Below the pieces are notes generated by a model. That model did not search any database and had not been told where the DNA came from. It saw nothing but the letters and a program-made list of their open reading frames with translations. Positions 28,691 to 62,841 of a stretch of DNA of 64,000 nt are shown here, piece after piece. Positions within the stretch are counted from its first letter, which is position 1. Each line of letters begins with the position of its first letter. Position numbers and translations under genes: made by a program. The DNA is from Trichosphaerium sp. ATCC 40318. Its lineage: Eukaryota > Protista > Tubulinea. Location: positions 248,001 to 312,000 of the forward strand of contig JALMLS010000455.1 of assembly GCA_038496445.1 (NCBI GenBank), in the 5' to 3' direction.

Positions 28691-29519
28691 TCAAACTACT
28701 CTGGATGTTAATAAATCTTTACCACGTTCTCCATCACTGAATATACAATGCATTGCCAGATATCCATCAGCATGCCAATACTTACATTCTCCGTGTAACG
28801 AACCTTTTCTGAAATTTAACTTTGAAAGAAGTTTACCTTTGTCGCTCCAGTATAAACACAAACCATCTCTTAAATCATTTTTGTGATCACTTTCTTCTAC
28901 AAGTTGTCCATTTGATGACCATATTCTACGCTTTCCTTCAAGCTTATCCATAACATACGTGCCTTGTACATTAAGCAACTTGTTTGGATGAAATTTCCGG
29001 AAAGAACCATGCAAAAAACCATTAACATAAGTGCAAGCTGTAAAAATATTTCCACTTAGATAATAAGAATACCAATGTCCGTGTTTTTTAAGTTCCGGAG
29101 AAAACCGAGAAGCTACAGCCATTTTTTTGGATGAAACTGGTAATTTTATGTAAGCATCCTTTGATAAATGTGTTACGATCGATAGAACACGTGGTGGTAA
29201 ATCATACAATAAAGGACGAGCTACAAGGTTTCCATCTTTGAAAAAACATTTTTGTCTTTGTTCGCCCTTAAAACCACGTATCCACGTGCCATTCTTTTTA
29301 CACGCACGTGTAAATCTTTTAGAAAGAACAGCTGTTTGTTTTGATAATAATGGCCAATTGTAGTACACCTCGGTGTCCATACTGCATATCACGTGTTGAA
29401 GTTCGCTTGGTAAGGAGTACAACCTGTTTTAGATCAACTTTATTTCCTTGCTAATCTAACGTTACGTACGACGACTGTAGTACTCGTGCATGCGATTCAA
29501 GGGGTCTTTTAGCAGCCAT
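28691..29519 (-). CDS. Double F-box-like + MORN-variant (YwqK-like) repeat protein
   Basis: Exon 1 MAAKRPLESHARVLQSS, one intron (~29424-29469), then LYSLPSELQHVI... and LYDLPPRVLSIV.... These are followed by MORN_2-type repeats (HGHWYSYYLSGN, LHGSFRKFHPN, LEGKRRIWSSNGQL, RDGLCLYWSDKGKL, LHGECKYWHADG). Confidence 0.8.
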
Positions 29520-47189: not shown

Positions 47190-47604
47190 GTTAGGCTATT
47201 TTTGTCCTAAAATGAACATAAGATGGAAAGGTGCAAAACTTGTATAAAGAGATAATGGATGTCAACGTACTCTGTATTGGAAAATTACAAAGATGAATCA
47301 AACCAACACCGATTTTGCCTGTCAAAAGCAAGGTATTGACAAAACGTGTTTCTTGTACGCTGTAAATAAACACTACGCACTTGAAAAGCGATAGAATCAA
47401 AAGGTTTGACACAACAAATCAAGCGTTGTTCAATTAATTTGCACGCTTAACAGAACGCTACTGGTGAGTGTATTAATAGGTTTCACACTAATTCACACAA
47501 AGCTTGTTAAGAGTTTTAACAAAAAACTTCGTTTTAACGTAAAAGTGTTCACGGCGTACAAAAAGGTTGAGTGTATGTTTAAAAGAGACTAGCGGTTTAG
47601 AATA

Positions 47605-50600
47605 ATGGCAAAGAGCAAGGCTACGTGTAGCTTAGTTATCGATGCTAACAATGAATGCTCTTTGGAGTCTCTCGACGCATGCATAACGCTCACGGGTAAT
47701 TTTTAGCTCTTTTTGAGAGAATTAGCGTCCCAATTAACTAAAATATGTACCAAGGCTTTCTCGCGTATGCTAGTGTAACCATGATATGGAAGAATCCGTT
47801 AAATGAAGAAAAAGAAGGAGAGGTATGAAACGGTAGAATGCGAAACGCTAAAAACGCCTGCAGCTCGTTTTTCCGATGCCTGATGACGCCAAAGTAACGT
47901 CTTACGCGCTTGACATTGGAGGGAAACTTGTGCCAGCAACGATTGTCGAAGTACGTAGCATGCACCTGTAGACTGTCTAATGTCCTACAAGCGTGAAGTA
48001 GCAAGGGTTGCTTACGAAGTTGAAGAACGTGTAGTTGTCAAAGAAACTTCAACAAAAAACTTTGTCGCTCCTTTACAGCCAACAGCAGTTACGTTTTCTG
48101 TGGTAGAAGAGACAATTGGAAACGAGTTCAAAACAAGAATATTTCCGCTTCCAAAAAACAGTGCGTGCTTCCACTAGCTACCACACCATTATTAACTTGT
48201 ATCAGGTACCCGCACAGTTAAAATAGAGTTCCACTGGGAGATTAAGCGTGAACCAAATGAGTCAGAGCTCTCACTTCCCATAATTGTGAAAAACACAGTG
48301 AAAACATTTAATCTTAGTGTACCCTTTATCACTTGTTATTACACAACTAACAGTACATCCAGGTCATTGCAGACTCTGTCGTAGCACCAAAACTGTATAA
48401 TAACAAGAAACGAGTGCCACAGCATCGATGGACACACGAAGAGAATGCATGGCGCTATTCACACTCACTAAAAGACCATGCAATCTCAAGCGGAATATCT
48501 CTTTCTATACCAAAAATTCCCTCTGTTGTGCTTGGCAAGCATAACAACGAAGTAAGTACTTAAACATTTAACGTTACGCAGCTTTGTTTACACTACGTTC
48601 CTATTATTTTCTTAAAAACAAGATATTTACTAATATCTGTGCAGACTTTCTTTGCTATCAATGATATCCCTAATGTTCCAAAAACAGCAACAACACTTGA
48701 TTCAAAAAGTAAAATTGCAATACTATGGGATGCTAGTCTATCACGTGCAAAAGTAGATAAGAAAGAAGAATATAATGTATTGCGTGCTCTTCACAAAAAG
48801 GTAAAAATCTCACAGGCAGTTCTTACTGAGCTTCAACTAGCTGGGCGTTTGTGGAGTAGACCTATTCGTATTTAGAAATATAGTGGAGTCTCCTCAAGCA
48901 CTCAAACTTGGATCTAACCTTATAGAAACGTTAGAGAAGGTAAGTAAATGATTGATAAAACAAGAAATGAAGATTAAGAATAAACTGTAGATTAAGTATG
49001 ATGGTGGAACAATTTTAAGCGATTTTAAATGGTCTCTTGATTACAGCTGCTATCTCTTATTTACTGATGGCATGGAAACTATGACTTTAAATAACGATAA
49101 ATGTGATATACCTGTACCTATTCACGTGCTCTCTAGTAGTAAAAAAAGTAACAAAAAATTCTTGAAAGTATTAGGTACATTTACTTGTACTTCGTTCTCA
49201 ACTAACTATAATGGCTCATAGCTCGTAAAAGCGGTGGAAAGTACTTTAAATTATGGGAGCAAATGTCATCCGATTCAATTGCTAAACGAGTGTGTTCACC
49301 TCAGTTTTCTCTACTTGCAGTAACTACGAAAAATATTGACATAAAAGACAATGTGTCTAAGGTCTATCCATCAATACCCACGCCTTGTGATTCGGATATG
49401 AACATATCTGGTACAATATCAGGAACTCAGCCTATAGAACTTGTCTTGGTACGTGTTTCTAATATAACTAAGTTTTAATACAAGCTCAATAGCAATACGG
49501 TTATGGTAGTACTTGCACCTTGAAGAAAACTTACACAGTGGACCCAAAGGCAGCAATAGTATCACGTGCATGTTCAATATTCTGGGCTCAATGTAAGATA
49601 TCAGAACTCGAGTTATTTCCAGAGATAGATGGCAACGATAAAGCCATAACAGAAGTAAGTCACAACATGTCTTCGAATCAATAACAATTTATTTTAGGTT
49701 GGAAAGAGCTTTGGCATTGTAACATCTAACACTTCTCTACTTTTACTGGAGAGTTTATCTCAATATTTGAAACGTTTGTCTTCACTATTTCCTTGAAAAG
49801 ACTTGTAACTTGTAACGCTTTGAATAGATGATATCGAACCTCCTGCACAGCTTGAGGAGATCCGAAAGCAATACCTTGAAATCAAAAAAGGAAAAGACGA
49901 TCAGAAAGAAGCTGTTGAACGTGAAAGGGTATTTCTTTTCGTCTTTTATACTTTTGGTTTGTTAACAATATTTAAGCTTAATCATGTCCTTGGCATGTGG
50001 CATAGACGTTTGGCTTGGTGGAATGACGATCAAACTTGCCCAGAGTTCGTTTGATTACCTTGTCTTTTACATCAAGACACGGAAACTTACCTATTTGTAG
50101 GCATCCTGAACCGTTCTCACTCCATCATTGTACATACCCACAAGGTGTTGATACTTACTCTACAGCAGATTCTTCTTGGAGTGAATACAAGTGCGTAACT
50201 AATCATAGTAGTTTATATATGATAAAGAACTCATGAGTAGCTTTGAGCTTCAGAAAAAGGAACTGCGAACAGAAGATAGTCAACGAGTCAACATTGACAA
50301 ACACGTTCAAGATTTACGTGATTACATCACAACACTACGTGAAGCACAACAACGTACGCCCTTGTTTTTTAGCAATAGCTTTGTGTACCTCTTGAACTAA
50401 TATTTTTCCTTATGAAGGTTTTGCTGGAAGCAAGACATTACAAAAGATGACATGTGGTGCTGTTATAAGAACTGCCAAACGGCATATTGTAGTAAAACAA
50501 TACACTTTCGAAAGATTCTTGGAGAAAGCAAGGTTCCTTAGCTTGGCAGCTGTTGCAATTTCCAGCGAAGTCAGGTACATTCTGAAACTAATTTCTTCAT

Positions 50601-53600
50601 ACACAAAAGTAACGAACAATAAGTTTTCCGAATGCGGGATATGCAGCTATAAACAGAATAAAATGCACTTTTTATTCACTGGTTGAATCAGTCGTACAGC
50701 TTATTGATGAAGTCAAAGAGGTACACATATCATTTGAACGTATTAATCACCATGAAAAATTGACTTTAAACTGAAGGGGTTATCATCGGCATCAACAATA
50801 AAAGAAGTGCCCAAAATAAGTGCTGATGAGTATGAACCTTTGAGCAATTTAGTTGAGTACATGCTACTCGTAGAACAATGCCAAAACCTTGCCAATATTG
50901 TACAACTTTCTCAAAATCGCGAACTGTCTTCTCAACACGTATGTGATGTTAGTGTTTGATACTATCTACTCATCTCTCATAGGTCGAGAATCGTGATAAA
51001 AAAAAAGTGATTGATCGCTTAGTAGAGCAGCTTGAAACATTGAAACAAAAGTTGCAAATGTATGATGGCCTTAATGACAAGTGGTTAAAGGAGATGCTCT
51101 CTATAGTCAGAAACGTTACCACAATCTATAATACGTGTATGAACGAAACTACACACCACTTGCAAATGAAAGCAAATGAGCGTATGTTGAACAACATTTT
51201 TTATTCTTGTTTTTTTTCGAAAATAAACAAACCTTTCTTCCTAACCAAAATTTCCCTAGTTATGGATTTCATTGTTACCACATTGCACGTACGTATTTAT
51301 TATGTCGCCACGCTAAAAAATAACCTTAAAAACAGAAAGCTCTTACGATTAATGACGTTATGAGTGATATCACTACTTGTGTTTATCTTGTTGATGCAAC
51401 TATATCATGTGCACTACAAACCGCTGAAGGCATTTCTGTGTATATCCAATGTGATGATGTAGTAGACGCAATTTGTAACTTAATCAATACCATTGACAAG
51501 CCAATAATACCAGTTAAGCCAAAGGTGCGCACTGAACATATTTAGTTATGTTGTTTCTAAAAAAAATTTGCAACAGGCTCTGAAAGAGATACAAAGTGCT
51601 ATTGAAGCTGCTGTAAATAATCTCGAATCTTCTAATTCTAAAATCGTATCTGGAGCTTGTAATGGTTCATCTATTATTGGTAGTTCAGCCAAGGAATGTG
51701 AACTTGCTATTAAAGATATCGTGCAAGCAGTACAAGCAGCATCACAAAAGCCTGGTACATATAAACCAATAGTAGACCAAGCAAGAGCTAGTGAAATAAT
51801 AGCCAACATTACCAGTGCTACAATGATTATGGAACGTAATCAAAAAGGCATGGATGTTAACTCACAAAATTTTTCTGACAGTTGTTAGATGGAAAACAAG
51901 TAATGCAAACCGCCAAAGATATGTGTACAAATGTAAACACACTTATTGGTATTGCCAGAGATGCCTGTAAAAAACCTGGTGCAGATATACAACGTATTAT
52001 GAACGGAGCAAAGCAAACTGCTAGAGCAATACAAGCTGTTGTCACAGCTGCAAGGGGTTAGGCATATACTTTTTGCTAGTTCAACATTACTAAACTTAGT
52101 ACCACATTAGGAACCAAAAGCTTTGCTGATATACCAGCGTTGGTAACCGCTGGTCAACATATGAACAAGACTGTAACTTCTCTTGGCCGTATATTGGGCA
52201 TAGACGATACACCCAGTGGTGTTACTACCGAGGAAGCCGTAGATCCAGAAGTAGCTAAGAAGCTTGCAGTTGTAACAAAGACAGCTGCCAGGTTAATAAA
52301 CGAATTGATTCGTGCGTCATCATCAGTTTCTGCCAATTTCAGTGATTCTGCTGCTAGTAGCAAGGTATGTCATTTAGCCGTGTATTTTTTGAACACTTAT
52401 GACAACCTAACTATGTGTTAGCTCTATGAATCATCGAAGAGAGTCACTGATGTAGCAAAAGAGCTCCTTGATATTAGTAAACATCTAGATAAACCAGAAC
52501 TTCCTAGAAATGAACCAGATCCTACTCTTGATGTACTACAAGTTAAGAAGAGTGAAGATATTGAGTCTGTTGCTCTGAAGGAACTATCTAATACTCTTAA
52601 GATAGTAAAGACCTCCTCAGAGACCATATACAGCGTTAACTCCAAATATACTTCACAAAGTACCTATGATGTCCTCAAAGAAAACGTACACTTACAAAGA
52701 TATAACAACAATTAAACTCTTGTAGAATGTCAGGGATGCTGTTACCAGTGCTGTAACTGCCATAACCATTGCACTGGGAAAACTATTGATTTGTTGTGTT
52801 GATACTCAGAAGAAACGTGTTGGTAAGAATTTAGCTACTGGAGGTAAACGTTATGCAAACGATACCTTGTGGGCCAAAGGTCTTATTTCCGCTGCGAAAA
52901 AAGTTACTGGAGCTGTACAAGTACTTGTTGAGACGGCTAAGAGATACCTTGAGGTATGTTGTGTTTGACCATAAGAGTAGCTTTTTGATCTCATAATTAT
53001 TGCAACAGGAATGCTTTGATGAATCACAGCTTATTGCCGCTGCTAAGACAATATCAGCTTCAACAACTCAATTGGTATCAGCTTCTTGTGTTAAAGTAAA
53101 ATACAATTCCCTTAGCAATCAGAAAATACGTGGTGCTACTAAATCTGTTAACAAGGCGATTATAGAACTTGTTCAGGCAGCAAAAAGTAGTTGTAGCTTC
53201 CTCGAGGATCAAGATGTACAACAAGCAATAAGTGATCCTATAAATATGGAAGCGCGAACAAGAGTGTTTAATGTACAAAAACAACTAGAGCTGGCCAGAA
53301 AAGAGCTTTCTACTATTAAAGTCGAGGTATGCTTCTACTAGCTCTTACTTAACATGTAACATTTTCTCATGTTGTTTAGTGCAAAAAACCAAAAGGAAAA
53401 GGTGGTTTTGGTTTTGGTGGTAAAGGAAAGGTCAAACGCGGTGTTGGTGTTGACATTGACGCTGATGTGAAGGTAAAGAGTAAGAAACGAAACGGCCTCG
53501 GTTCCAGTGGCAAAAGAAAGGCTCCAGCGGCATCCTCATCTTCACTTGACCTTGTTGAGGGCAAATATGGTGGATCCGGTTTCGTTCTTGGTATTCAAGC

Positions 53601-56600
53601 AAAGCCACTTGGAAGTAAACCTTCAATTGAATCCCTTTTTGAGGTACAAAATTCACTTTGCCATTTTTTTTTCCACTCGTTTGCTGTATTGATAACTCGA
53701 GATGTTTTAGATGTGTGATAGAGACCAACTGAGGAATAGCACAGAAGCTGTTGATTCAATGAAAAAGAGAATAGCTGAAAGCAAGAAAGAAATAGGAACT
53801 CGTTTGAATAAGTTTGAAGAAGAGGAAAAGAGAAGATACGAGGAAGAAAAAGCAATGTGTGCTATGAAAGAGCTTATTTCTCGCCGTAAAGCTGAAGCTT
53901 GTATAAAAAGAACTAAAGAAGAAGCAATGCATCAGTATGAAGAGGAACAGAGAGCTGAAGAACAAGCTGTTGCTTCTATGCGTGAACGCATTGCTCTTCG
54001 TAAAGCTGATATACAAAGCAAGAAAAAGTTCGAGGCTCAGGCTTTAGAGAAGTACGAACGCGAAAATTCTAAGCAAAATAGGCAATCTCTTGATGATACT
54101 TCACAGCTATACAATCAGGTATGATAATACTGCAACATGGTTTTCGTTTTTTCTTACATGTTTATTCAAAGGAACGAGACAGACTTCTTTCATGCTCATG
54201 TTATGTAACGAAGGATGAAGCTATTAAACTTGCATCACTAGCACTTCAAGCTGATAAAGGTAACTATAGTCACTCAGAGAGTATAAGTGGATATATGCCA
54301 GAGATGCATAAAGCATACAAAAATGCAACTGTAGTAAGGTAAAGTTTATTTTTGTTCGAAGAATAACTATTGCTAAACTGAATCTTTTCACTTGTTTAAC
54401 TCTTCTGTTATTAAAGTGCATGGAGAAAACTTTCTGGTATATCATCTCTAGATGCCAAGAAAAGATTCATTTCTTCAATGAAGTCTTTTGGTTCAAACAC
54501 AGCGTTTCTGACTACTGTACATATCAACCTTTAGTTTTATTGTTCCTTCCTTCTTACCTTTTTTTTTTCAAAATAGAAGCCTGTTAGAGGTAAAAGAAAA
54601 CCTTTACAACAGTATATTGTTATTAGTCCGAGTGGTATAAGAATTGTATCATCTACAGGAGCTGTCACTAAAACTCGTCCTATTACACATTTAAAACGAT
54701 GGGCAGCAAACAAAGGAAGCTTTACGCTTGATTTTGGTGATTACGAAGATGACTATTTCACAGTTCAAACCCCTCATGGAGACACAATGTCACAAATTAT
54801 ATCCGGTTACATTGATAACGTATTAAAAAGTACTTACATTTTACAACCATGGGTATATACTTATGTGATAAACTAGGGCGCAAGGAAGTGCAGAAAATGG
54901 CTGAAACTGAGGCTGAGACTGCGGATATTGATGATATCCTAGATGATCTGAGTAGTTTGAGACCTTCATCAACCTCACAGAGTTTATCTCTTCCCGGCGC
55001 AGTAGTATCACGTTTAGGAACAAAGAAAAGCTCTTGGCATAACTTTAGAGATTTCGTAAAGTTAATGAACAGACAAACGTCGCACGTGATGAGTTTTACT
55101 GCTTCTGAATTGGGTACTTCAAACAAACAAATTACTATCATCCACCTTTACTGACCTGTTACAATAAAGGTACAAATGGTAGTTTAAATACAAATGGTGA
55201 TCTTGTATTGAAAGGTAGATTTGCTAGCAAGCAAATAGAACAAGTGATGAAACGTTACATGAGCACTTACGTTTATTGCAATAAGTGCAGGTCATCCAAT
55301 ACAACAATTACTAAAAAGAATCGGCTGATGACCCTTGATTGCATGTCTTGTTCAGCTTCGTACCAAGTACCATCTATAAAGACAGGTTTCTCTTCATTGT
55401 CAAGACGCAACCGTAGAAAGTCAACAGCATCAACTGAAGCGAATCCACCTGTTACCCAACCGACAACTAACATTGCTCTGCCTGTTATACAACCGAAGAA
55501 GAAGTTCTTTAAGAGTTCAAGGTCAGCAAATAAAGAAGACTTGGAACGATACAGAAAAGAGCTATTAAAAGAAACAAAGAATGATAGTGATAAAAGAAAC
55601 TTTGTTGTCATTAAAGTAAAGATGGAGAATACAATCAAAACAAAAAGATATGATCCCATGAGCCTCATTAATAATATCATCCGAGATTTTGGTGTCGGTG
55701 AGACCTTGCGTTATCAATTCTATTGATGTCAATACTGTAATACTTACTTCAATCTTTAGGCGTCAATTACGGTATTTTTGAGCATGCAACAGTAAGAGAC
55801 CATTTGCAATTTTTAATGGAATTGTATTACTAACGTTTTGGACGTAGACAAAGTGTAGAGCTAGATGGTTGAATACCAATCGCACGTTTTTATTCTATGA
55901 TATTACATCAGGGGTTAGCTTTGCTCTTACTCTTCTTTAACTTTGTTAATATCATGTTTATCTAGACAACATTGGTTTGTATGAAGAAGCACAAACCTGT
56001 TCGCATTGAGTTAATGGATTCAACTATAAAAACGGTACGTGACTTTGTTCTGTTGGTGATTTTCTTCACTTTGAAAATAATACAAATTGTTTGTGCACGT
56101 GATAATAGTGGGAATGTTTTATTCTGAACATATTTTTTATGTAGATTTTGGTGGATACTTCTTCAAGTGTAGAATCTATAGTAAAACAAATATCTGAGAA
56201 GTTAGGCATTAAACATGCTGAAGAGTTTGGTACGGTTGCAGGTTTTCTTTAAATTTTCACAAAACCACCAATCTGTTTTGTTGTGATTTTCTATTTTACA
56301 CGGTTTATTTACATTTTTAGGTCTCAAGCCACGTGATTCAGGTAATACGATTAGTAAAAAGCAAAGCTTAAACTGTCCCTTACATTTTTCTTAGACACAA
56401 CGTGGCTAAGAGCAACAGAAGATCTTTGCCAGAATAACATTGATATTACAAATACTATTACTCTTAAGTTTTCCAAGCGTTTTTTTTATTCAGACAATAC
56501 TATTGATAGAAGCGATTCAACCCAACTCCATCTTGTATACGAACAGGTATATTTTAATGCATTTCTCAGGAGTACTTCAAGCTTAGAGATAGCAATCTCT

Positions 56601-59600
56601 TCGGTTTTTTCGTTATGTTAATTTTTTCATTTTAGACGAAGTCAAGCATTCTTAACGATCAGTACCCCTGCAGTATATACGAAGCACGTGACTTTGCTTC
56701 TTTACAATTGCAAATAGATATTGGAGATTACTCTCCAGTAAAAGATACGCCAGAAAACATCAGGTAGGATTTTTACAGCGCCTAAAATAAAATGGGCAAA
56801 GCTTTTCTTCGCTTAACTCTTCATACTTATCTTCATTAGACTTGAAAATTATTTATCAGCTTCCCACCTAAAGCATAAGAATATTGCCCGTGATATATTT
56901 CAGACGCATAAGAAATATGTTGGCATGTCAGAAATCAATGCAAAATACAGATACGTACAACTTGCACGTTCATTGAAAACATACGGTATCACCTTTTTCA
57001 ATGTAACGGAACCTGTGCGTGGAAAGACAAATCCCCTTCGTCGCATGCTTGGATGTTCTCGAGATTCAATTATTCTTATGGATACTAAAACAAAGGTAAG
57101 AAATCACGTGAACAGTGACAAAAGCTTTTTTATTTAAGGGACCTCCTGTTAAGCAAACTCTTTGTGTTACTAATGTCTAACTTTTTTTTTTTACTAGACT
57201 GTAATAAAAGAGTGGAAAATAACGCAAATAAAACGATGGGCAGCAACATCATCAACGTTCACACTTGACTTTGGTGACTATGAGAGCGATTACATCACAT
57301 ACCAAACAACAGAAGGAGACAGTATTTCTCAGTTAATAGCTGGATACATTGACATAATGCTCAAGGTTAGAAAAGACGTAGGATCGCAAATGACGGAAGA
57401 AGATGCTAGTGTTGATAGCAAAGAAAGTGTGGCATTTGTACGTGTTTTTTTTTCTTTAATCAACAACCAAAGCGCTAACTCTGTTGCTTCTCATTGATAT
57501 GTCTAGTCTTCTGGCACGGAAGCACTGCTTTTATCAATGCCTTCAGCTTCTCTGCACAACCAAGATGAGGTTAAACTTCAACATCCCAAACAAATCAATA
57601 GAGATAAAGACAATGACGATGTCGATTTAAAAATGCCATGCCTTCTTTTTGACAGTGCTCTCTCTAACCTTCGGTTAGTACAAGATACAAAGTTATTATC
57701 GTTCAACACTTACTTTATGACACTAGTGCTAATATTAACAACAAAGACTTTATTGTTAAGTACAGCAGGGAATGCTTCAAAAAATATAGTAACATTGTGC
57801 GAGTTGCAAAAAACCTGGTAAAGCCTGACGCACCGAACAGTGAGCGTATCAAAAAGAATTTAGTAGTATCTACAAATTTCTTAAAGAAGCTCTTATCTGC
57901 CGCAAAGGCTGCCTGTTCAAAGCCTAATGATCCGAAGAACCAACAAGAGTTATTGGATGCTATAAAAGCCAGTCAAGCTGCTGTGCAGGTTCGTAGTACT
58001 TTTCTTTGTTGGCTTCTTATGTTTTGTTCAAATAGACACTTGTTGATGAAAGTAAAGAGCAACCTTCGATTCTTTTGGTAAAGCTTGAATCTAAGATAGA
58101 TGAATACGAAGAAGAGCAATATACAGAGCCAAGTACGAAACAAAGTTGGTTTTGGTTTTTTTCAAAGTTTTCTTTTTTATGTGTAAGCTGTTAATATCCA
58201 TGTGATGATATCCTTACACTATTTTATTTCTACAAGTAATCTAAAGCAAAACAACAGTATCTTCGAACATTCTTGAACTTGGATTTGTCAAAAAAAGACC
58301 AACTCTGAGTTTTTTCTTTTCAGATTTTTGTTGACTTTGCACTGAGTCCCTGGGGTTTTTTTAGTTTGGCCCATTGAAGGCGATAAGTTATTATTGTTCG
58401 TTCTTATTTTAGTAGTTACAATGAGTTTGAAGGATTGGTGTACAAATGAGTTATACATGGAAAAAATTACTAGTGAATCTTTACTTGATAGCAAGTATGA
58501 TATTTATTTTAAGTCACGTGACGAAAATATTACATCAATGCACTTTTTCATGGACGTCGCATCTCACTTTTTCACGTTGAACTCAATAAAACGTACGCAG
58601 TCACCGTAGAATTGGCGTTTTTCCGAAAAAAACATTGTTTGATATTATTTAGGCTCTTCTGATCTTGCTATGCGCATTCTATCGAATATTTCTGAACTTC
58701 AACCTGAAGATCCCTCTTCTCTTAGATTGTTTGCTTACTTTCTTCAATACCAGACGTCTATTGGTACTTAGTTCTTTCAACAAAACGTTGTTCAGTTTTC
58801 GAGTTATTGTTCAAGTCGAAACAGTTACAGGCCTGAACTAATCCAACGTTTAGCAATGTCTGAACAAGATATTACCAAAGCTTCTTTGTTTAATAACTGC
58901 GCTATTAAGATGTTAAAGAGGATAAAGAAACTAAGACCAGAAGAACCACAAGTATGCAAAGAAAACCTGTAAAACAAAATTAATCAGAAACTCACTTGTT
59001 CTTAGTCGTTCCTTGATTTGGCTGTTTCTCTTGAAACCTCCGCTTCAATACTACGAAAAGAAGTCAAAGGTGTTAATGATGATTTACGTGCACGTGTATC
59101 GCCTATTTATGGAGAAGCAATATCACTTCTAAAAAAGGTTGTTGTTAACAAATGGGACGCGAGATTCGATCAAATACAAGTCACAGCATTGACCGAAGTA
59201 AGTTAAGAAAAATATGAGAATGACAAACAAGTTCTACGAGAGCTCACGAAATTTTTTAGATGAATAAAATCCTTGGTATTCTTGATCACTTGGATATACG
59301 CAATGATGTCGCTTTGTCCATTGGTACGTAGTTTGAATCATGTTGAGGAACAGAAGCAAAAAAAAATTAACAGTTTTTTTCTTTGTTAGAGTCTTTGTAT
59401 GTTGCAAACATTGATGTCGATCTTCGGATTGTCATGTATTGGGATACTGATAAAACAGATATTGATTTACAAATAACTCAACCAGACGGAGAAAAGTGTT
59501 ACAGCTTCAACAATAAGGTACCCAAGCCAACTTATTTTCAAAAGTGAAAAAACAATTTTTTTTTTGTTTCACCAGCAGCACTCACTCATTTGATCTTTAG

Positions 59601-59940
59601 ACAAAATGTGGCGGTATGATGTCACGAGACTTTACTTACGGATATGGACCTCAAGAATACCTACTTCGTGAAGCGCCAGATGGAGAATTCAATGTACGTC
59701 ACAAAGAATAACACCTCCCAAAAAACCCCAAAAATACAACTTAATTCAGTCTAACTGTATGTTAAGGTCGACGTGTCATTATTCTCAAACATACAAAACC
59801 CAAAACCAGTGAGTGTTTTTGTTAAGATAATATCAAACTTTGGAAGACCAGGAAAGGAAAAAGAATGGTATTCTTTTGCACGACTATCAAAACCAAAAGA
59901 AAAAATAACGCTTGCTACTTTTACAAGAAAACTTGTGTAA
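47605..59940 (+). CDS. Giant chimeric protein: VIT-vWA-[talin rod/I-LWEQ, coiled coil, FERM F2F3, eIF2beta domain, FERM F0-F3]-TPR-DUF2135
   Basis: VIT ([21 protein letters not shown]; [12 protein letters not shown]), vWA-like ([22 protein letters not shown]), I/LWEQ ([10 protein letters not shown]), FERM twice (KRWAA...FTLDFGDYE), eIF2beta (CNKCRS...CMSC) and C-terminal LRPEEPQ / [17 protein letters not shown] / [13 protein letters not shown]. Splice phases were consistent at every inter-domain junction I traced. Confidence 0.7.
52540..53326 (+). other. I/LWEQ (THATCH) actin-binding domain within the chimera
   Basis: [71 protein letters not shown]. Confidence 0.88.
54980..55400 (+). other. 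eIF2beta (eIF-5_eIF-2B family) core and C2-C2 zinc finger within the chimera
   Basis: [35 protein letters not shown]|[44 protein letters not shown]...LDCMSC...SIKTGF matches the eIF2beta pattern along its length. Confidence 0.9.
55600..57370 (+). other. Complete talin head (F0-F1-F2-F3 FERM) within the chimera
   Basis: [109 protein letters not shown]. Confidence 0.92.
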
Positions 59941-60327
59941 ATAAAAAAAAAGCCGCTTCTAGTGAACAAATGTACTTCGTCAGTGGTTGAGCTCAATGCA
60001 TACTTTGTAGTTAACTCGGACTATAAAATCCCTTAAACAAAACACCAAGCAAAGTGCAAATGACTACCTTTAAATCTAGTACATCCTAAGCCTTTTGTGA
60101 ACTTCCTCACTCACAATAAGTTGCACAATAAAATTCTTTTACATCTTTCTTAATATTCAGTCAATTTCTATGAAACAAGTAGATGACACCTAACGAACGA
60201 GCCTATCTACGCGCATAACAATTGCAATGTAAGTTGGGTTGTTTTCTGAAATAATAATTATTAAATCCTTGTTTGTACAATACTTGTGGTGAGTGCGGTT
60301 TTGTTTTTTGTTGGTTTCTTTACCCAT

Positions 60328-62841
60328 TTACTCGTCCTCATCAGCAACAACATTTTGGCCATCTCCAGCGTCTTCAGCATCATCAGCAGTATCCTCTACT
60401 TGGACATCCGCTTCATCTGTTTCGTCTCCTTCTGGATCATCTTCAACTTGTTCATCGTCTTCAACTTCATCATTTGTTGCTTCCTCAACCTCATTTTCTT
60501 CTTCCTGAGGCTCTGCAACGTTTTCCTCTGCAACTTCATCATCTGCTACTGTATCTTCTTCAGGTCGAGCATCTTCTTCGGCAACATCTACGCCTTCACC
60601 ACTCTCGTCATTTTCAGCTACATCCACTTCTTCGTCTACTTGTTCTTCTTCCTTCTCGAGAGCTTCTTCAGCTGAAGCTTCGTTCTCTACTGGTGGTTCA
60701 GCGTCCTCAAGTGTCTCATCTTCTTTTGGTTTTTCTGTTTCTTTTTCTTTATCTTCCTCTGCAGGTTCTTTATCTTCAGTAGATTTAACCTCTTCTTCTG
60801 TTACAGGTTGTTTTACTTCGTCTCTACCAACACAAGGTTAACAAACACCACACGACCTATAAATACAACTATATGCATAATATATAATATCACAACAAAG
60901 TGTTATAATCTCTAGAGAACATAGAACACGTAAAGCGTGCAAACGCAAGAAAAAAAAGTCAATTGATGTCAAATAGGCAACAATCATCTTCACAATTCTA
61001 CGCGATTTTCTCGTGGTAACAGATGTGTAAATAGATAAATACACAAAGGAAACATACATACATAGATAATAGATACAATAGATAAATAAAAAAAAATTGT
61101 TGATTTTCTTTACGCGCTTTCATCAAGTAGCACTACAACATTCTCCTTTTGCGTTTTTTTTGTTTTTTTTAAAAGAGGCAAGCAAAGCAAGAGGAATCTC
61201 CTAGCAAAGCCCCCAAAAAAAAAAACAAGGTGAAAACGCAACAAAACCAAAAAAAACCCGTGATACAGTACATATAATGTGTTTACATTGCAAAAACGTA
61301 CTGCCTTTTCTTAACACTATTCCCACCTGCAGCTGCTTTTTGAAAAGCAGCCATTCTTTCCTTTAAACTCTTAACACCTAACGAAATCGTTAGCAACAGT
61401 TATAACAACGCCAACCGAAAAGCAAGGCCTAAAAATGAATTTAAAAACTTACCAGTTGGTAAAACTCTGGCGCCGCTGGTGTTGCTAGAACCACTTCGAT
61501 TCACTGGCATAGTTGCAGAGCGTGCTAAAAGTGAATTTAGTAATGCAATTGAAAGGAAATTGAAAAACACTCCGAAGCCGGAGAACAAAATTATGAGATC
61601 ATAAATGATTGATCTTGTGCTAGAACTACTTGTTCGATTTTCTCGTACCTCGTGTAGTAGTAGACGTTTGTGTATTGCGTGTGGCACCACTACCATATGA
61701 TCTTCCATATGAAGGTGTAGTCTTCTGCTGAGGAGGCTTGCTTCTGTAAGGAGAATAACCACTTCGAACTGGGGTCTTAGTTGGAGTAGTGGTTCTATTG
61801 TAGCCGCTGGTTGTTTTGGATGTTTGTGGGGTGCTCTTCTGTGCTGCGTTGGTTTGTTTAATCCTATCTCTAAGAGCGACATCCGTTAGCAACCAATTTG
61901 ATTAGTAAAAATTATGTAAACGTACTGTACAGACATCTTAGGAGTTGACGAACCACCAGACGATACTGGCACTACCATTGCCAAAAGCGTTTTTTGTTTG
62001 CTTCCAAGCTCACGTCTACGCTCTTCAAAATAATCGTCTGAGCTCTTCATAGTCTCCACTTGGCGTTTACCAACACCTAATAGATGTTTGTGAGTGAAAA
62101 AAAAAACGTGCGATTGTGGAAAGTTGTTAATTTTTTCTATAACGCCAAAAACCGCCTTGTACGATTAAACGAGATGAAACCACGTTAAGGAAAGAGGGAA
62201 CAAAAAAAAAAAAAGAAAAATTAAGATTTTCGTCTTGTATTTAAAATTACCGGTATGTGTGGCTGCCCATTGTTTTCTAGGTACCATATTATCTTTGTTT
62301 AGTTTTGCGAGAAGACCAACACCGCCACCTAGATTTTGTTAAACCCATACTAATTAAGCGTTTCGTACCAATCTTTTCTGCGTATCTGTGGACGTTTTGT
62401 GCTTTAATGTGTCGCTTTTCTGGTCCGTGACACCGTACGCCCTAAAACATTCTAATTAATCTCGCGTGTTGTATAATAGAGTACATTGGCGTTCCACAAA
62501 ATGTTTTGCGTAGTTTTTAAAACGAACAAACAAAAAAAAAATAGAGACTGTCGATAAAAAGCGCAAACTGCAAGAACAATGGATAAACGAAAAAGAAAGA
62601 GAGGGTTGACAACAGCGGATGATTATTTTGCTAATTACACTTTTGCGTGTTTTAAAACAAAATGTAAGGAGTGTAACAGCGCGCTGTAGCAAAATTTCGA
62701 GCGCAGTGCATCGTAAGTTCGCCAAAAAAAAGCTAAAATAAACAAACACTGATCTTGTAACGAGTAACTAACCTGCACTTTTGGCCATTTGCGGGCGGCA
62801 TTAGATTGATTTGATCTCCAGGCTTGTCCTGTTGTTGTCAT
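60328..62841 (-). CDS. Disordered protein with basic N-half and very acidic C-terminal exon (possibly cytoskeletal)
   Basis: Exons MTTTGQAW...WPKVQ|GVRCHGPEKRHIKAQ...|GGGVGLLAKLNKD...|...VKSLKERMAAFQKAA|, then an E/D-rich last exon ending ...ADEDE*. Confidence 0.6.

Follow-up and report, generated by a model that had tools for sequence, protein, structure and literature searches.

In this study, we found that the plus strand of a 64-kb window from the amoeba Trichosphaerium sp. ATCC 40318 (64,000 nt of contig JALMLS010000455.1; all coordinates below are those of the window) carries at 47605-59940 what is probably a single gene of 55 exons, predicted to encode a protein of ~2,973 aa that represents a lineage-specific amoeba family. 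We put the probability of this reading at roughly 0.65, the splice at 58133-58415 that would attach the C-terminal part being putative. In the predicted protein, the two halves of a bacterial-type VIT-vWA-TPR-DUF2135 protein, hereafter the chassis, stand on either side of a long series of talin-like and eIF2beta-like modules, hereafter the cargo. The features are listed in Table 1.

The bacterial relatives of the chassis were identified by tblastn of plasmid records with the DUF2135 exon, which returned proteins annotated as "VIT domain-containing", 924-1,007 aa in length, from Aureibacter, Sphingomonas, and Deinococcus. The Aureibacter and Deinococcus proteins have the Pfam architecture VIT ... 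TPR ... DUF2135, and the Sphingomonas protein scored VIT only. Using the Aureibacter protein as query, 836 relatives were retrieved, and a family hidden Markov model (HMM) of 973 positions was built from 56 bacterial VIT..DUF2135 proteins. Against this model, the spliced N-half (47605-50190) scored 308.9 bits (E 5e-96) and the spliced C-half (58416-59937) scored 221 bits overall and 211.8 bits for the domain (E 5e-69). The initial annotation had read these as the two halves of one bacterial-type protein; ~8.2 kb apart, they are colinear and complementary, the first covering profile positions 29-596 and the second positions 675-969. The N-half keeps 30 of the 43 family-invariant residues, including the W-D-x-S of the metal ion-dependent adhesion site (MIDAS) and D361, and the C-half keeps 26 of 32. 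Exon by exon, Pfam is nearly blank on the chassis apart from VIT on exon 3 (E 4e-4), and DUF2135 reaches only E 0.17; by tblastn, the C-half matches bacterial VIT proteins with E 1.6e-13. No second copy matching the family HMM was found elsewhere in the window on either strand. Taken together, the profile comparisons confirmed a common bacterial-type family for both chassis halves and placed the split exactly at its linker.

The initial annotation had also stated that bacterial chains with VIT and DUF2135 carry a linker at the split point, and the split does fall in a variable, disordered bacterial linker. HMM positions ~585-674 are the most variable stretch of the family, being 56-128 aa long, of low complexity, and acidic or Lys-rich. 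When the Aureibacter protein is modelled with AlphaFold2, the predicted local distance difference test score of residues 601-701 is ~30, indicating disorder, while both halves are modelled with confidence (overall predicted template modelling score, pTM, 0.81); an ESM Atlas relative likewise has a pTM of 0.81. Nearly all bacterial relatives listed carry both halves in one chain. It is most likely that the amoeba family had its origin in secreted VIT-vWA-TPR-DUF2135 proteins of bacteria. Bacterial members start with a hydrophobic leader, whereas the amoeba protein begins at HMM position 29 and has no signal peptide. The amoeba copy would thus have lost its signal peptide and, because of this loss, is probably cytosolic. 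The published Trichosphaerium annotation contains single models of 1,456 and 1,603 aa with bacterial DUF2135 proteins of ~950 aa as best hits (PMC10521059). These models exceed the bacterial proteins by ~500-650 aa, the length expected of cargo carriers.

Throughout 47.6-59.9 kb, the plus strand consists of stop-free segments of 30-200 codons that switch among frames, as in intron-rich eukaryotic DNA. The curated model joins them into 55 exons with 54 GT-AG introns, giving ~8.9 kb of open coding sequence and 2,973 aa. Up to 58132, its introns range from 40 to 110 nt with a median of 54 nt, the longest being 110, 102, and 93 nt. A window-wide first-pass exon chain has 117 introns of 40-75 nt (mean 53.6 nt) with the donor consensus GTA[C/A]GT, and the published Trichosphaerium genome has a GC content of 37.69%, a mean intron of 75 nt, and a mean exon of 154 nt (PMC10521059). 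All the junctions named in the initial annotation are present as GT-AG introns, at 50045-50100, 53327-53379, 54830-54876, and 58133-58412/58415.

The attachment of the N-half to the cargo does not depend on the last of these junctions. A GT-AG intron of 50 nt at 50191-50240 (donor score 4.2) joins the two, and no gap between 47605 and 58132 exceeds 110 nt. In a manual reading against talin, the exons flanking the 102- and 110-nt introns presumably leave no gap either. The end of the I/LWEQ dimerisation helix is the one natural end point for a talin-like gene, yet coding continues beyond it into exon 29. This exon opens exactly at its acceptor, has a codon score of 0.217 in frame versus ~0 in the other two frames, and would stay open by chance in shuffled sequence with a probability of 0.0034. 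It contains no ATG and is therefore translatable only as a continuation, not as the start of a new gene. Because every gap is of 110 nt or less, too little for a gene boundary, and because exon 29 can be read only in this way, the sequence by itself gives good support for a fusion between the N-half and the talin-like and eIF2beta-like cargo. Two observations were made at the intron joining them. If it were retained, the N-half frame would end at TGA 50234-50236, giving an N-half protein that lacks cargo; and ATG 50233, which opens the cargo frame, overlaps this TGA (ATGA), probably by chance.

The same features bear on the possibility that the chassis gene splices directly from ~50045 or 50191 to 58413, leaving the talin-like and eIF2beta-like units as independent genes nested in a giant intron. 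Talin and eIF2beta normally stand alone, and ATGs are present at 50233, 53711, and 54897. However, the donors at 50045 and 50191 are of phase 2 and the acceptor at 58415 requires phase 1, and skipping of the cargo would be out of frame; the direct splice considered in the initial annotation is thereby counter-indicated. An intron of 8.2 kb would be ~150 times the median, the internal gaps of at most 110 nt are too short for gene boundaries, and exon 29 is coding without an ATG. In addition, the eIF2beta unit has no N-terminal third and continues into talin F0 inside one exon. On splice phase and gap sizes, the nested arrangement was rejected, and we regard it as highly improbable.

Pfam eIF-5_eIF-2B (PF01873) matches the eIF2beta unit on two exons (E 1.8e-7 and 4.2e-17), and it aligns to residues 246-325 of the 333 of human eIF2beta (E 5e-18) with all four Cys present. 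Exon 35 (55170-55697) passes from its zinc ribbon through a linker to the start of talin F0 with no stop, and 55109-55723 is open for 205 codons. Thus, against the expectation that talin and eIF2beta are stand-alone proteins, the eIF2beta core and the talin head are fused here within a single exon. The best relatives of the core are ordinary eIF2beta proteins with 47% identity. A search with 55109-55723 of 1.84 billion protein representatives gave 1,110 matches, of which the best 150 were ordinary eIF2beta only; none of these reached the F0 part, and no eIF2beta-FERM fusion was among them. No identity was above 49%, and the genome studied here thus seems to be missing from that set.

An architecture without precedent could also arise from an assembly chimera or from a decaying array of pseudogenes with no product. 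Nevertheless, the ~8.9 kb of coding sequence remains open across the 55 exons with canonical splice sites, and the family-invariant residues of the chassis are preserved, as are the zinc-ribbon Cys and the core of F3. The published Trichosphaerium assembly used Nanopore and PacBio reads, with scaffolds named "longreads" (PMC10521059). An artefact or a dead locus therefore seems most unlikely.

What has to be weighed is the last junction. The donor at 58133, with a score of 4.0, ranks among the best 1.4% of GT sites and coincides exactly with the end of the coding-like sequence; the acceptor scores 2.7 at 58415 or 1.4 at 58412. Among control genes of the window, sites this strong were seen at one of 21 gene ends and at none of 21 gene starts, versus 26% and 11% of the introns in this gene. 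The sense strand of 58133-58415 is T-rich and intron-like (T 0.42 vs 0.37), with intergenic spacers too variable for a firm call. No AATAAA-like motif was found in this interval, and scans for poly(A) and promoter motifs gave nothing usable.

Several observations weigh against a single gene, the main alternative being two adjacent genes, the first (47605-58192) encoding the N-half with all the cargo, and the second (58421-59940) a TPR-DUF2135 protein of ~355 aa starting MSLKDW. At 283 nt, the putative intron is 5 times the median and 2.6 times the next-longest intron (110 nt), far beyond the 40-110 nt range of the gene. An in-frame stop lies at 58190-58192, 19 codons past the donor, and the first conserved position of the C-half, three codons in, is an ATG (58421). 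In bacteria, clusters of half length exist, namely an N-half-only VIT form (608 aa) and an N-truncated form (685 aa, matching residues 284-962, vWA-to-DUF2135), and half-chassis proteins may thus be viable; small DUF2135 proteins, YfaP among them, are found in bacteria too. In a search for sequencing runs with 53200-59199, no RNA run was listed. The spliced junction 58132|58413/58416 was absent from metagenome contigs by exact search, and no loci related to the first exon of the C-half were found in the metagenome scan. Moreover, our home-made Viterbi gene finder, used as a proposer of exons only, always merged everything and overran the true stop at 59940; because it also bridges true gene ends, the phase-matched joinability of the two halves is weak evidence and carries no weight as proof.

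On the other hand, with two genes, a 3' untranslated region (UTR), a promoter, and a 5' UTR would have to share 228 nt, whereas a same-strand spacer that we checked (47190-47604) measures 416 nt and the genome-average spacer is ~0.7 kb as estimated from published figures (PMC10521059). Also speaking against two genes are the top-1.4% donor at the end of the coding-like sequence, the strong, phase-matched acceptor 6 nt before the ATG, and the missing AATAAA-like signal. In addition, the family position aligned with this Met is hydrophobic (I/V), so that a Met there is not rare. We estimate that the local signals alone roughly cancel, favouring the splice by perhaps 2:1. One gene becomes the likelier reading when the context is considered, because nearly all listed bacterial relatives carry both halves in one chain (although half-length forms exist), the halves model as one body, and only 228 nt are to spare. 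Two adjacent genes are thus a serious but unlikely alternative, and even then both products might still assemble together. As for the initial annotation, its statement that there is no intergenic-sized gap is borne out as far as 58132 (maximum 110 nt), the final gap measuring 283 nt. Its scaffold of ~3,000 aa is borne out in the continuity from N-half to cargo, in the eIF2beta-talin fusion, and in the length of 2,973 aa, while the place of the C-half on the same mRNA is putative.

Table 1. Predicted features of the gene at 47605-59940, assuming that all exons belong to one transcript.
Feature	Position	Strand	Remarks
Chassis N-half, exons 1-15, residues 1 to ~627	47605-50190	+	VIT; vWA with MIDAS (WDASLS); beta region; helices to conserved W (MWHRRLAWW)
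Cargo start, exons 16-22	50241-51524	+	~315 aa, helical; exon-level searches matched nothing in Pfam or the PDB
Talin rod part, exons 23-26	51577-52685	+	IBS2B-like bundle 51577-52055, then another helical bundle
I/LWEQ (THATCH) actin-binding domain and terminal dimerisation helix, exons 27-28	52726-53326	+	Pfam I_LWEQ, E 8.5e-7 and 2e-16
Gly/Lys-rich exon 29, 88 codons	53380-53643	+	Carries the frame onward past I/LWEQ; preceded by a 53-nt intron
Charged coiled coil, exon 30, 136 aa	53711-54118	+	Open frame; flanking introns of 67 and 53 nt
First, partial talin head (second half of F2, and F3, PTB-like), exons 31-33	54172-54829	+	F3 at 54577-54829
eIF2beta core	54877-55412	+	Acidic leader, central domain, CxxC-x17-CxxC zinc ribbon; no Lys boxes
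Linker and complete second talin head F0-F1-F2-F3, exons 35-44	55413-57437	+	FERM_M and IRS/F3 matches
Linker and talin-rod-like helical bundle, exons 45-47, end of cargo	57507-58132	+	Bundle 57728-57988, weak matches
Putative intron, 283 nt (280 nt with acceptor 58412)	58133-58415	+	GT-AG, phase 1 on both sides; the one-gene reading hinges on it
Chassis C-half, exons 48-55, residues 2618-2973	58416-59940	+	TPR-like helices, DUF2135 beta-sandwich; stop codon 59938-59940

The cargo modules were assigned mostly at the level of single exons. In the rod part, the Pfam Talin_IBS2B hits cover profile positions 3-57 and 62-115 and fall in colinear order on two successive exons within 51577-52055 (E 0.04 and 0.008), and the I/LWEQ exons match talin-1 residues 2421-2526, HIP12, and Sla2 in the PDB. 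Both F3 copies match talin F3 in the PDB (E 6.9e-19 for the first); the F3 of the first head also matches Pfam IRS (E 6e-16), and is 62% identical to the F3 of the second head over 55 aa. The second head gives Pfam FERM_M at 56841-57095 (E 2.7e-10) and IRS in its F3 at 57198-57437 (E 8.4e-15); its F0 and F1, assigned by manual reading against talin, are presumed. The terminal bundle matches Pfam Talin_IBS2B (E 1.4e-5) and talin-1 residues 847-897 in the PDB (E 3e-4 to 3e-3), both weakly. With their core residues kept, the cargo domains look folded. The permuted order of rod and head, together with the duplicated head, is the pattern that would be expected if this part had been cut from a tandem duplicate. 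As further observations on the second head, its F0-F1 region (55760-56394) is made up of tiny exons of 32, 66, 69, 85, and ~21 nt, the 21-nt exon being uncertain, and its F1 has no long loop of the kind found in animal talins.

Elsewhere in the window, a single-exon open reading frame (ORF) on the minus strand at 28691-29422 encodes 243 aa of MORN/YwqK-like repeats; genes of this kind are also present in the published Trichosphaerium annotation, where their best hits are bacterial proteins named "YwqK family antitoxin" (PMC10521059). Just past the stop of the gene, all three plus-strand frames are open for 100-170 codons at 60258-60782. This is a low-complexity, strand-biased stretch (GC skew -0.28 to -0.32), into which the first pass of the gene finder spliced wrongly. 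A first-pass gene prediction lies near it, and a long minus-strand ORF is found at 61400-61882.

If the one-gene reading is correct, a disordered bacterial linker of ~90 aa would have been replaced by ~1,990 aa of host-type modules, in the order helical bundles, IBS2B-like bundle, I/LWEQ, Gly/Lys spacer, coiled coil, F2-F3, eIF2beta core, F0-F3, and a short talin-like bundle. The chassis halves could then pack into one body, with the cargo held out as a giant loop. In this arrangement, the folded talin and eIF2beta copies might be offered to molecules that bind or cut the real ones, e.g. effectors of intracellular bacteria or giant viruses, and the chassis might report or trap the binding or cleavage event. 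Such display of a bait or decoy is our leading, still tentative, guess at the function, in part because small DUF2135 proteins adjoin genes for alpha-2-macroglobulin, a bait-and-trap protein, in bacteria. In a scan of bacterial genomes with the DUF2135 exon, only small DUF2135 proteins were found, beside an alpha-2-macroglobulin gene, and DUF2135 in this sense travels with bait-and-trap proteins. The contig concerned, from a Clostridia metagenome-assembled genome (CAZTNO010000015.1, 23-4072), carries an alpha-2-macroglobulin gene (A2M, TED, MG10) followed by two small Glucodextran_B-like/DUF2135-like proteins, and E. coli YfaP, another small DUF2135 protein, also matches the amoeba DUF2135 exon. 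The function so described is proposed by analogy. An ordinary role as an adaptor linking actin and membrane is somewhat less probable than bait display. It would be speculative, and we think it doubtful, to go further and place the gene in a large amoebal integrated-decoy immune system outside plants, in which copies of hub proteins are shown on unrelated, bacterial-derived chassis.

Every part has its place in a family already known, and proteins are known to acquire inserted domains, whereas the combination and the insertion site were not found in the literature searched; the same literature search gave no mention of DUF2135. The view of the initial annotation that no such architecture was known was likewise borne out by the searches of protein representatives and of the literature. 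If this is one gene, a bacterially acquired protein would serve as the frame, and its disordered linker would have accepted unrelated, folded modules of eukaryotic type, ~2,000 residues in all. A single chain would then combine parts of talin with the core of a translation factor, an architecture not found elsewhere in the searches made. Should the decoy reading be true, a decoy or sensor system of a new kind would be present in an amoeba that is noted for extensive exchange of genes with giant viruses. The gene may instead testify to domain shuffling, circular permutation included, by a route that is unusually active.

Among known systems, plant integrated-decoy receptors (nucleotide-binding leucine-rich repeat receptors with integrated decoys, NLR-ID) and the bait region of alpha-2-macroglobulin both present a variable, target-like piece on a conserved chassis. 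The chassis described here shares no homology with NLRs or with A2M, and the likeness is one of concept only. Also comparable are the inter-alpha-inhibitor heavy chain ITIH1 and the cytoplasmic VIT/vWFA proteins VWA5A and Dictyostelium Vwa1; VIT-vWFA proteins that reside inside the cell have been described in amoebae (PMC10539598). By Foldseek, ITIH1 (PDB 6FPY) is the closest fold to the N-half of the bacterial homologue (E 6e-20 over ~580 columns), and the chassis N-half would accordingly have the ITIH1 fold as tested on that homologue, but these proteins have neither the TPR-DUF2135 C-half nor an inserted cargo.

With talin (TalA/TalB, talin-1), the cargo has in common the F0-F3 head, the PTB core of F3, the IBS2B-like rod bundle, and I/LWEQ with its dimerisation helix. 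Talin runs from head through rod to a C-terminal I/LWEQ, whereas in the cargo the rod part and I/LWEQ (51577-53326) precede both heads (54172-57437). Unlike in talin, moreover, there are two heads, a partial and a complete one, I/LWEQ is internal, and the whole is embedded in another protein. While the full talin rod comprises 13 helical bundles, exon-level matches in the cargo are limited to an IBS2B-like bundle, I/LWEQ, and one R4-like bundle. The eIF2beta unit resembles eIF2beta in its central domain and CxxC-x17-CxxC zinc ribbon; ordinary eIF2beta, however, is a free-standing protein of ~300 aa with N-terminal Lys boxes, and the cargo unit, without the N-terminal third, lies between FERM domains. 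Finally, the bacterial VIT-vWA-TPR-DUF2135 proteins (WP_309942093.1 of Aureibacter tunicatorum; PF08487 and PF09906) share with the amoeba gene the order of the two halves, the MIDAS motif, and the GYGP motif of DUF2135. They are ~950 aa long, with a signal peptide and a disordered linker of 56-128 aa, whereas the amoeba gene has no signal peptide, has 54 introns, and would bear ~1,990 aa of folded eukaryotic modules at the place of the linker.

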